From the NCBI GenBank assembly GCA_977030845.1, contig OZ365118.1:4216001-4280000 (forward strand): a stretch of 64,000 nt of DNA, read 5' to 3'. Shown here one piece after another: positions 56,801-59,800 of the stretch. Under the pieces are notes generated by a model. It saw only the letters and a program-made list of their open reading frames with translations, did not search any database and had not been told where the DNA came from. The position numbers and the translations under genes are program-made. The DNA is from Fimbriosthenelais zetlandica (Eukaryota). Each line of letters starts with the position of its first letter. Position 1 is the first letter of the stretch.

Positions 56801-59800
56801 CAACACAATAAAGACTTCAGGATAAATTAATGATAGGGAATATTAGATCTAAGGTCTCAACATTAGGCAAAACAGTTGCATCAAAGGCATAACTGTACCT
56901 CCCCAAAAGGGTATTTCTCCTGTTCAGAGATTCTGTATATATATTATACACCAAGAAACCCAGAAAATGCTGACAAACTATTTGGCGGTGCTAAATACTT
57001 AACAGAATTACCCGGTTCAGTCTTTGTTATATTTTAAATTGATTCCTAAATGAATGGTAGGATTTTTTGAGTTGAACGTTTTGCAATATTTGCAAAGTTC
57101 AATTTTGATTCTCGGAGCATTAACTGTCTTCTTATTGTGATATGAATATATATGACTTCATGTTTAATAAATCTTTTGATAAAGAAAACAGCTTCAGATG
57201 TATGTGTTCTCTTTCTTTACAAACATTTTCATTAATACCTTTCACCCTAATTTAGTACAGGAACCATATTTGATATTGCCTAAACGTATAAAGTAAAACA
57301 AAGTTGTCTGTTACCCAAGTACGTACCTAAAAATTGTGCTTTCGCACAGCTCAGAAATACCTTTAAATAGAAAAAACTCCTCTAAAAATATATCTTGCCT
57401 AACAAAATTAAAAAGGAATATATGTGTTCACTTACCTTATCCATCTGTTCAGGGGAAGCCAGTGAGAATGATGCGCGGACATAGGGACAGGGGGAGTCAG
57501 GGTCGGGCATGAAGGCGCATCCAGGCACGAGAAGAACCTGGTGAGAAAACATGGAACTAGTGAATAAGACATGCAAGAAACAGCTGCATCACCCAGGAGG
57601 AAAAGTGTGTGAAACCAGAAATGTAACAAAAGCATAATTTACATAAAATATTCATGTAAAATTCATATAATTCCTTCATTAAAAAAATAGAAACAATTGC
57701 AAAATAGAAGGTGCCTGTAATTCAGGGCAATGAAAGGACCCCCATATAATAAAGGAGTCCATGAATTTTGATATACCAATTAATTTATGTAGCTTCAATA
57801 GAACTATAGTTCACCTGGTCATTGTTTATGTGTAAGGTCAATATGCAGGTGCATACACGCATGATATAGTTCATGCTCTTACCACTATGTGGCGCTTTTA
57901 TTCAACCACTATCATTTTATTCTGAGCATCAAAGAAACTCATCTATTACATCTTATCACGCAAGGCTTTACTCAAATTATCCCTCCGGGAATGTTCGATA
58001 TGCCTACTCCTAACAACTCACAGGTTTTAGGGCAAAGAATATGTTTGAATCTTGTATTTTCCTCCCCTTTAGATGGAGCCTACACCGTGGGGAGGATCTG
58101 TGAGACAGAGACCCATATAAAGGTTGGAGTAAGACTGATTATAAATGCCCGGATGAACCTTGGTGGTCCGGGGTGCAGGCTTCAAACCTGTAGCTGACTG
58201 ACGTCAGAGTGGTTCAATTCCACCTTTCGGGCGTTTTTAATTTTAGATTTGATAGAAAATTTTAAACTAAATCAAAAACTATTGGTAAAAAATATATGGT
58301 AAACTAATTCTACGACTGAATATATTGAAATATTAATGGTATATTTTTGTGCAAATATTCCAAGAATTTAACATATTAGAGGATAGGCTATAACATGGGA
58401 CATTTTTGTGTGTATAAAATAAATTATGAGATAACAAACAGGTGATTTAAATATAAATTATTTACCTCTTTTTCCAGGGCTTTCTTTTCTATGAGATCTT
58501 TAGTGTCGTCGATGCCACAGAGTTTCATCCAAAGAAACATTCCTGCCACAGGTTCATTCCATTCAGCTAGGCCTGGAGAGGAGATGAAACAACATTAAAA
58601 TACCAATAATTCATAGTAAAACCAATAAATATTACTATCAGAAATATGAAGGTAAAATAGAGGAGTTATTGTAACATTTCTCACCTTTTAACCATTTATT
58701 AGAATAATGGATCATTTCGTCTTTCTGTTCCTTGTAGAATTGGACTACCCTGGGGGACAAATAAATTTTATTAGTGTATAAATATTATAAGTGTATAAAT
58801 TAAAGTATAAATTGAGGAGATAAGAGCTATGTTTGTCATAAATTTGATGACAATCACAATGCACCTGTCCCATTATCATGATATAGAACCATGCTGGTAC
58901 CAAGTACATCATTTACAGCTTGTAGTTCCACGAAATTAAATGAAAAATGAACACATATATAACTTACTGCTTCACGTGGCTCTTAAATCCATCAAGTCCC
59001 CAGTGATGAAGCACTTCACTTATCAGTACCTGATAAAGACAAAAATTAAAAATATATTATATCAAAATATAATCAATAGTATTAATTATAAGGCTTTATA
59101 AGTAAAAATTGCGTCTAATACTATATTTTTATAACTTATAAAAGACATTAATTTCAAGTTTCTTCTCCGTTTATTGAAGACCTTTTGGTAAATTATCTTG
59201 TAATAATGAATGTGTATAGGTACCTGTGACATTGTGCTGGCCTGCATGGCTGACACCATCTGATGCATGATAACTCGCTGAACGAGCGGCTGAGGTCCCG
59301 TCACGAATCCAAACCGTAACCTGCAACGTAACATCAGTTAATTATAGATCTAATCTATACAAGGTATATTTATAATTGAAAAATATTCAGTAACATCTAA
59401 ATTATTTAATGAATTTAACTGCAAGACTATAGACATAATTCTGAAAGGAATTTTCTGGACGAAATTTAGTTGATTCAGTTTAGAAATATAAAATGTGATT
59501 CTCACCCTGAGGAAATGACTTTAGAGAATGAATCGTAACGAAGCACTCGTCCATCCACGTCCATAGATAGGAAACTAGGGGCAGGGCTCTAAAAAAAAGG
59601 TGAGAAATACTTAATAGACATTAAAAAAGGTCGGGAACTGATATCTACAAACAGAGGCTTGTCTAAAAACAGTCGCTTATCAGGAGTACCATAGATTAGA
59701 GGTCTACTTACATCAGTATACTGGAGGTAGTAGTAAGGATCATCTTCCATGATCAACATGTCATATTTCTGGGCGATCTGACAAGAAATAAAATCATTAA

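Follow-up and report, generated by a model that had tools for sequence, protein, structure and literature searches.

A Selenocysteine tRNA Gene with a Small Nuclear RNA-Type Promoter Lies Antisense in an AADAT Intron of Fimbriosthenelais zetlandica, with at Least One Paralogue Elsewhere in the Genome

Introduction

Selenocysteine tRNA (tRNA-Sec) is charged with serine, which is then converted to selenocysteine (Sec) by PSTK and SepSecS, and serves the mRNAs of selenoproteins. In the present study, we analyzed a tRNA-Sec gene in a 64,000-nt stretch of the genome of Fimbriosthenelais zetlandica (NCBI GenBank assembly GCA_977030845.1, contig OZ365118.1, positions 4,216,001 to 4,280,000 of the forward strand), which is referred to hereafter as the window. 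The gene lies antisense within intron 11 of AADAT, which encodes kynurenine/alpha-aminoadipate aminotransferase, and a second copy was found on another contig of the same genome, designated C11. An original prediction, made from the letters of the window only, regarded the gene as the single tRNA-Sec locus of the animal and proposed a possible coupling or antagonism between its RNA polymerase III (Pol III) transcription and that of AADAT by RNA polymerase II (Pol II). The locus described herein is ordinary in kind: it is a tRNA-Sec gene with a promoter of the small nuclear RNA (snRNA) type that shares its nested position with many other tRNA genes, has a counterpart elsewhere in the genome, and is not conserved in its pairing with the host gene.

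The vertebrate tRNA-Sec gene (Trsp / TRU-TCA1-1) specifies a 9/4 cloverleaf with a 6-bp D stem, a long variable arm, the anticodon UCA, and the discriminator base G73, all of which are shared by the window gene. The acceptor stem and T arm of the window gene are presumably also those of human tRNA-Sec letter for letter. The promoter elements of the vertebrate gene are a TATA box at about -30, a proximal sequence element (PSE) at about -70, and a distal sequence element (DSE) at about -200 (PMC3459062). The window gene resembles vertebrate tRNA[Ser]Sec in having a TATA box at about -30, a PSE at about -65 to -70 (PMC3459062), and a run of T residues directly 3' of the gene, whereas it differs in that this invertebrate genome has its own PSE core, ACACC, and in that no DSE/Staf site was demonstrable at around -200. 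Mammals carry one functional copy and two copies are present here; furthermore, the functional tRNA-Sec gene of humans and other hominids is intergenic, located between FOSB and RTN2 (PMC5330540), whereas the window copy lies within AADAT.

Genomes with more than one tRNA-Sec gene have been described. A survey using Secmarker reported multiple likely functional tRNA-Sec genes in the zebrafish, lancelet, Lingula, spotted gar, coelacanth, Daphnia, and others (PMC5330540). As in these multi-copy genomes, the two copies in F. zetlandica are not identical, show only structure-preserving changes in stems, and both carry G73. The pairs in the survey were presented without promoter or host context (PMC5330540), whereas, in the present study, both copies are shown to have the same external promoter and to be placed antisense in introns of hosts unrelated to each other. 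A protein-coding gene also houses a second copy in humans, in which tRNA-Sec2 resides in an intron of PARVB; however, this copy is a retrocopy confined to hominids that lacks Pol III binding, described as 'dead on arrival' (PMC5330540), whereas the window copy has a complete set of PSE, TATA box, and terminator.

Two further systems are comparable in terms of nesting. The MIR in intron 1 of Polr3e is, like the window gene, a Pol III unit that is nested in the opposite orientation in the intron of a gene transcribed by Pol II (PMC5358760), and it exemplifies the mechanism to which the original prediction appealed. It is conserved across mammals and its roadblock effect on Pol II has been demonstrated by deletion (PMC5358760), whereas the nesting in the window is not conserved and an effect of it on Pol II is hypothetical. 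In Caenorhabditis, tRNA genes similarly occur inside introns of protein-coding genes, the promoters of which may influence them (PMC4999229). These tRNA genes have type 2 internal promoters and particular host-tRNA pairs are conserved between species (PMC4999229), in contrast to the external promoter of the window gene and a pairing with AADAT that was not conserved in the available loci.

Results

Identity and Fold of the tRNA-Sec Gene

ARAGORN detected one tRNA in the whole window, namely, a tRNA-Sec on the forward strand with the anticodon UCA (tca at tRNA position 36). When the entire window was compared with Rfam using gathering cutoffs, a single match was likewise obtained, RF01852 (tRNA-Sec), at 58147-58232, which covered the full model (1-91) with an E value of 2.5e-14 and a score of 78.0 bits, the gathering score being 47. 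In the Rfam structural alignment, the acceptor stem comprised 9 bp with one U·U mismatch, the D arm had a 6-bp stem and a loop of 4 nt, and the 9/4 fold was completed by an anticodon stem of 6 bp, a variable arm that was long, and a T stem of 4 bp. The minimum free energy (MFE) fold of the single sequence (-37.7 kcal/mol, z -2.9) reproduced the arms of tRNA-Sec. The discriminator base G73 corresponds to position 58233, immediately 5' of a run of five T residues (T5), and the T arm contains a sequence that, judging from the general tRNA consensus, may act as a B box. The window gene is a true eukaryotic tRNA-Sec. A multi-exon gene for SepSecS is present in the same genome (G000:C10:23475771-23478017), which indicates that this genome runs the Sec pathway.

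Promoter and Terminator

The putative PSE upstream of the tRNA-Sec gene was tested by reading the upstream regions of the U6, U1, and U2 genes of the same genome for comparison. In the U6 genes, both those in a tandem array on C34/C35 and one at a separate locus on C13, the motif ACACC was found at -65 and a TATA box at -31, the very positions that these two elements occupy upstream of the window tRNA-Sec; in the C11 copy of tRNA-Sec, they were found at -64 and -31, respectively. The motif was also present upstream of U1 (at -58 and -59 in L036 and L038/L039) and upstream of U2 (four of six loci read; at -51), and there was no TATA box in either of these classes. Of seven tRNA-Ser genes that were taken from this genome as controls, none had ACACC near -65, the sole occurrence of the motif being at about -98, and one had a TATA-like hexamer, at -33. 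Regarding its rarity, the 64-kb window, when read on both strands, contained only three occurrences of the composite ACACC-N28-30-TATAWA, with one being the tRNA-Sec promoter and another lying within a TA microsatellite. No match to 7SK, which would have been an additional gene with a type 3 promoter, was found in the genome.

In the classic arrangement in animals, an element of the SNAPc type is common to the snRNA genes transcribed by Pol II and Pol III, and a TATA box marks those transcribed by Pol III. The pattern of ACACC and TATA across the U1, U2, U6, and tRNA-Sec genes conforms to this arrangement. The presence of a genuine type 3 promoter, i.e., a gene-external Pol III promoter of the snRNA type, is thus established for the window tRNA-Sec at the sequence level.

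Several other observations were made on these promoters and snRNA genes. A second TATA-like run, TATAAAT, is located at 58140-58146, at -7, where it abuts the start of the window tRNA-Sec; the C11 copy has none. The tandem array mentioned above (G000:C34:394-25053 and G000:C35:604202-648288) is a repeat of approximately 4.1 kb with U2 (-), U1 (-), and U6 (+) in at least 16 units. By its sequence, U6 of this genome seems not to be of a vertebrate type. A divergent U6-like gene (G000:C1:44251310-44251419, L027; 80.7 bits) has a TATA box at approximately -31, whereas its ACACC core is replaced by AAACC; it is possibly an snRNA gene of the U6atac type or a variant one.

The Host Gene AADAT

The AADAT gene occupies the minus strand of the window. 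Its exon at 60016-60228 matched structures of human KAT II/AADAT with an E value of 1.2e-22, and aminotransferases of the Aro8 type were far weaker matches. Exons from approximately 62005 down to 57436 were placed by tblastn using AADAT proteins from Capitella (annelid), Lineus (nemertean), and Logan, and reading of the frames added a short exon at approximately 59480-59560 and a final exon just below 53740. The two approaches combined yielded 13 coding exons, which makes the intron that hosts the tRNA-Sec gene intron 11. The encoded protein was closest to annelid sequences (57%), with vertebrate sequences at approximately 51%. The tRNA-Sec gene is antisense to AADAT and separated from the donor site of intron 11 by 232 bp. 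The features of this region are listed in Table 1.

TABLE 1. Positions of the tRNA-Sec gene, its putative control elements, and the adjoining parts of AADAT in the window
Feature	Coordinates	Strand	Remarks
tRNA-Sec gene	58147..58233	+	87 nt including the discriminator G73; ARAGORN, Rfam, MFE fold
B-box-like sequence in the T arm, GGTTCAATTCC	58211..58221	+	Read from the sequence
TATA box, TATAAA	58116..58121	+	-31 to -26; position as in the U6 genes of the genome and the C11 tRNA-Sec
Proximal sequence element (PSE)	58080..58100	+	Core ACACC at 58082-58086, -65 to -61
Pol III terminator, T5	58234..58238	+	Directly 3' of the discriminator base
AADAT intron 11	57538..58465	-	928 bp, GT...AG, phase 0; polypyrimidine tract before AG
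AADAT exon 11	58466..58573	-	Clean translation (58466-58570); tblastn 78-81% identity, annelid/Logan AADAT residues 342-378
AADAT exon 12	57436..57537	-	Clean translation; tblastn 66-76% identity, AADAT residues ~377-410

The description of this locus in the original prediction was confirmed. The tRNA-Sec gene was recovered at the predicted place by ARAGORN and by Rfam; its position antisense in a 928-bp intron 11 of AADAT is supported by the splice sites, exon translations, and tblastn matches; and the TATA box at -31 and the T5 terminator are both present. As had been claimed, intron 11 ranks second in size among the introns of AADAT; only the last intron, of 3.7 kb, is larger. The PSE-like element that had been placed at -66 is real, with the same ACACC core as that in the U6 genes, and its position is corrected to -65.

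A single-exon open reading frame (ORF) of 546 aa (54646-56286, +) is nested antisense within the last intron of AADAT. Homologues with 50-58% identity occupy the same nested antisense position in two other contigs (L031 10001-11716 and L032 10001-11728), and weaker homologues were found in the same place in Lineus and Owenia (L050 14691-15113 (-) and L049 16195-16323 (-), respectively). The ORF had no Pfam match and just four homologous clusters among 5.8 billion proteins. Judging from these sequences, the pairing of the ORF with AADAT looks old, in contrast to the nesting of the tRNA gene.

A Second tRNA-Sec Copy on C11

Copy number was examined by a covariance-model search over the whole 447-Mb assembly. 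Besides the window gene, a second tRNA-Sec was found at G000:C11:19165946-19166031 (+) (L001 1501-1587) with a score of 80.8 bits and was confirmed by ARAGORN; after these two loci, the next-best matches were ordinary tRNA-Ser genes with scores of 47 bits or less. At least two tRNA-Sec paralogues are present in this genome, with the window gene being one of them. Therefore, the premise of a single-copy gene in the original prediction does not hold, because the C11 copy is at least as good and has the same promoter architecture. The prediction had named the combination of another expressed tRNA-Sec locus and a silent window copy as grounds for its rejection; of these, the existence of another locus was found, on C11.

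The two copies differ at two positions, 6 in the acceptor stem (58152 in the window) and 15 in the D stem (58161), and a G·U pair in the window copy corresponds to a Watson-Crick pair in the C11 copy at both. These are the sole differences between the two tRNAs, and the pattern fits purifying selection on both copies. At the 3' end, the C11 copy has a 16-nt trailer followed by a run of four T residues (T4), whereas T5 follows the window copy at once. Beyond the tRNA itself, the sequences flanking the two copies could not be aligned, with all blastn E values being 0.02 or higher, and yet the PSE core and the position of the TATA box were kept. The retention of promoter elements between diverged flanks speaks for an old duplication at the DNA level with selection on both promoters, and against a retrocopy of the kind of the dead human tRNA-Sec2 in PARVB (PMC5330540).

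Further upstream, a loosely common collinear block of approximately 45 nt (-283 to -237) was noted in both copies, and was no better than shuffled controls. An ungapped comparison of 30-mers between the two upstream regions gave a best value of 19/30, which was equal to that of the shuffled controls. Sensitive blastn of the flanks yielded nothing collinear or significant and did not find the block at about -280. As assessed by eye, both copies matched the Staf/ZNF143 consensus poorly.

The surroundings of the C11 copy are those of a gene for a p24/TMED protein. Three reading frames on the minus strand around the copy corresponded to positions 1-39, 36-83, and 106-148 of the Pfam family EMP24_GP25L (p24/GOLD), and a short exon with a typical p24 motif was found between them. 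The C11 tRNA-Sec, which is on the forward strand, is accordingly antisense within an intron of this gene, between the short exon with the p24 motif and the next exon.

AADAT Loci in Other Animals

Among its proposed checks, the original prediction listed the synteny of tRNA-Sec with AADAT across phyla. Seven other AADAT loci were compared: those of Capitella teleta, Owenia fusiformis, Lineus longissimus, and Takifugu flavidus, the two contigs L031 and L032, and one metagenome scaffold. L031 and L032 are megabase-scale ENA contigs that were reached via homologues of the nested 546-aa ORF, and in both of them the ORF occupies the last intron of AADAT, which lies on the other strand. Another homologue of the ORF, P0277 (70% identity), was on a 2.2-kb contig without AADAT exons. 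The metagenome scaffold, which spans AADAT exons 11 and 12, was the single fragment matched by a search with the reading frame of exon 11 (65% identity).

The position of intron 11 was identical in all seven loci, with sizes ranging from approximately 65 to 2400 bp. Neither ARAGORN nor Rfam found a tRNA in the 21.7-kb loci of L031 and L032; the AADAT genes of Capitella, Owenia, Lineus, and Takifugu, including introns and flanks, contained no tRNA and no Rfam match; and ARAGORN detected no tRNA in the metagenome scaffold, the intron of which is approximately 330 bp. A relic of the tRNA was also sought by blastn of the parts of the window intron that flank the gene (57538-58146 and 58234-58465) against intron 11 of L031 and L032, and no homology was found. 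The absence of a tRNA from intron 11 in all seven loci, together with the location of the human gene between FOSB and RTN2, shows a lack of synteny of tRNA-Sec and AADAT across phyla; such synteny is missing from primates as well (PMC5330540). The nesting belongs to the lineage of F. zetlandica.

Discussion

Taken together, the sequence features and comparisons described above make it likely that the tRNA-Sec gene of the window, one of a pair in the genome, is active under a type 3 Pol III promoter and that its place in AADAT intron 11 involves no selected tie to the host. Regarding the mechanism, the window copy is probably active and would be transcribed by Pol III from its gene-external promoter of the snRNA type, with SNAPc binding to the PSE through the ACACC core at -65 and TBP binding to the TATA box at -31. 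The predicted start of transcription is the first base of the mature tRNA or an adjacent one because the spacing of the PSE and TATA box, and that of the TATA box to the start, equal those of the U6 genes of the genome, and transcription would end at the T5 run directly after the discriminator base. The gene appears to have entered AADAT intron 11, in the antisense orientation, solely in this lineage. The simplest view is that the nesting is the neutral outcome of where an old DNA-level duplicate or a relocated copy landed, and not a conserved regulatory pairing.

Several points weigh against this interpretation. The window copy scored slightly lower than the C11 copy (78 versus 80.8 bits) because of its two extra G·U pairs. 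A distal activator of the Staf/SPH-like type common to the upstream regions of both tRNA-Sec copies was not demonstrable. The seven AADAT loci that were compared did not include those of very close relatives. In addition, a search for sequencing runs containing intron 11 listed none, and the same search with the 241-nt gene region gave runs with small shares only.

The first of these points also bears on the possibility that the window copy is silent or redundant and decaying into a pseudogene, with the C11 copy in the p24/TMED intron performing the work. The higher Rfam score and two additional Watson-Crick pairs of the C11 copy would be expected in such a case, and the intronic second tRNA-Sec gene of humans, in PARVB, is dead (PMC5330540). 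However, the human copy was retrotransposed and lacks Pol III binding (PMC5330540), whereas in the window the promoter has been kept despite the divergence of the flanks. The window copy retains the full architecture of PSE and TATA box with U6 spacing, an intact 9/4 fold, and G73, and its terminator is better than that of the C11 copy, with T5 following at once as opposed to T4 after a 16-nt trailer. Considering these features, we regard a silent window copy as unlikely.

The idea of the original prediction, which does not exclude a type 3 gene that is active in its own right, was that the antisense nesting is functional, such that head-on transcription by Pol III dampens AADAT or, conversely, transcription of AADAT by Pol II modulates the Sec tRNA. 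The antisense orientation was the only interfering one in the case of the Polr3e MIR (PMC5358760), host promoters influence intronic tRNA genes in C. elegans (PMC4999229), and the second tRNA-Sec copy of F. zetlandica is likewise antisense in an intron. On the other hand, the Polr3e MIR and the Caenorhabditis pairs are conserved, whereas the pairing of tRNA-Sec with AADAT was missing from the seven other AADAT loci. Neither AADAT nor a p24 cargo receptor has an evident link to selenium, and the presence of a second copy would buffer any coupling to selenoprotein capacity. The weight of these comparisons makes functional nesting rather improbable. If the nesting mattered, the antisense-intronic pair would represent a small natural test case for interference between Pol III and Pol II, and none of the present findings argues for this.

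A more extended form of this idea is that both paralogues have been kept antisense in Pol II introns for the sake of head-on traffic, which may tune the hosts or provide host-dependent domains of expression; a duplicated type 3 Pol III gene would then have been subfunctionalized via its host genes, AADAT and p24/TMED. Introns contain 44% of the tRNA genes of C. elegans, which is no more than expected by chance (PMC4999229), and, thus, two antisense-intronic copies in a compact genome are suggestive but weak evidence. We consider this form very improbable. The last alternative, a chance tRNA-like sequence or a repeat derived from a tRNA or a short interspersed nuclear element in place of a gene, is effectively refuted by a full-length Rfam match 31 bits over the gathering score, by the occurrence of just two such loci in the 447-Mb assembly, the next matches being ordinary tRNA-Ser genes of 47 bits or less, and by a specific promoter of the snRNA type with exact spacing.

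The present findings remove two claims, namely, that of a single essential locus and that of an ancient linkage between tRNA-Sec and AADAT. What they provide is a clean annotation for an invertebrate, with two tRNA-Sec genes and a type 3 promoter on each, as well as the ACACC core and spacing rules common to the U1, U2, U6, and tRNA-Sec genes of this animal. The picture of an snRNA-like tRNA-Sec promoter that has been drawn in vertebrates is thereby extended to a distant animal.

Other Features around the C11 Copy

A gene for an IF-2-like GTPase is located approximately 3-6 kb upstream of the C11 tRNA-Sec, and a U1 gene approximately 49 kb downstream (C11:19214835). A retroelement of approximately 12 kb is present on the same contig (G000:C11:19147008-19158993, L035/L033), bounded by direct repeats at approximately 19147008-19147821 and 19158180-19158993. 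The reading frames of the direct repeats translate identically, and the internal frames, which are on the minus strand, are 610, 1489, and 736 aa long.

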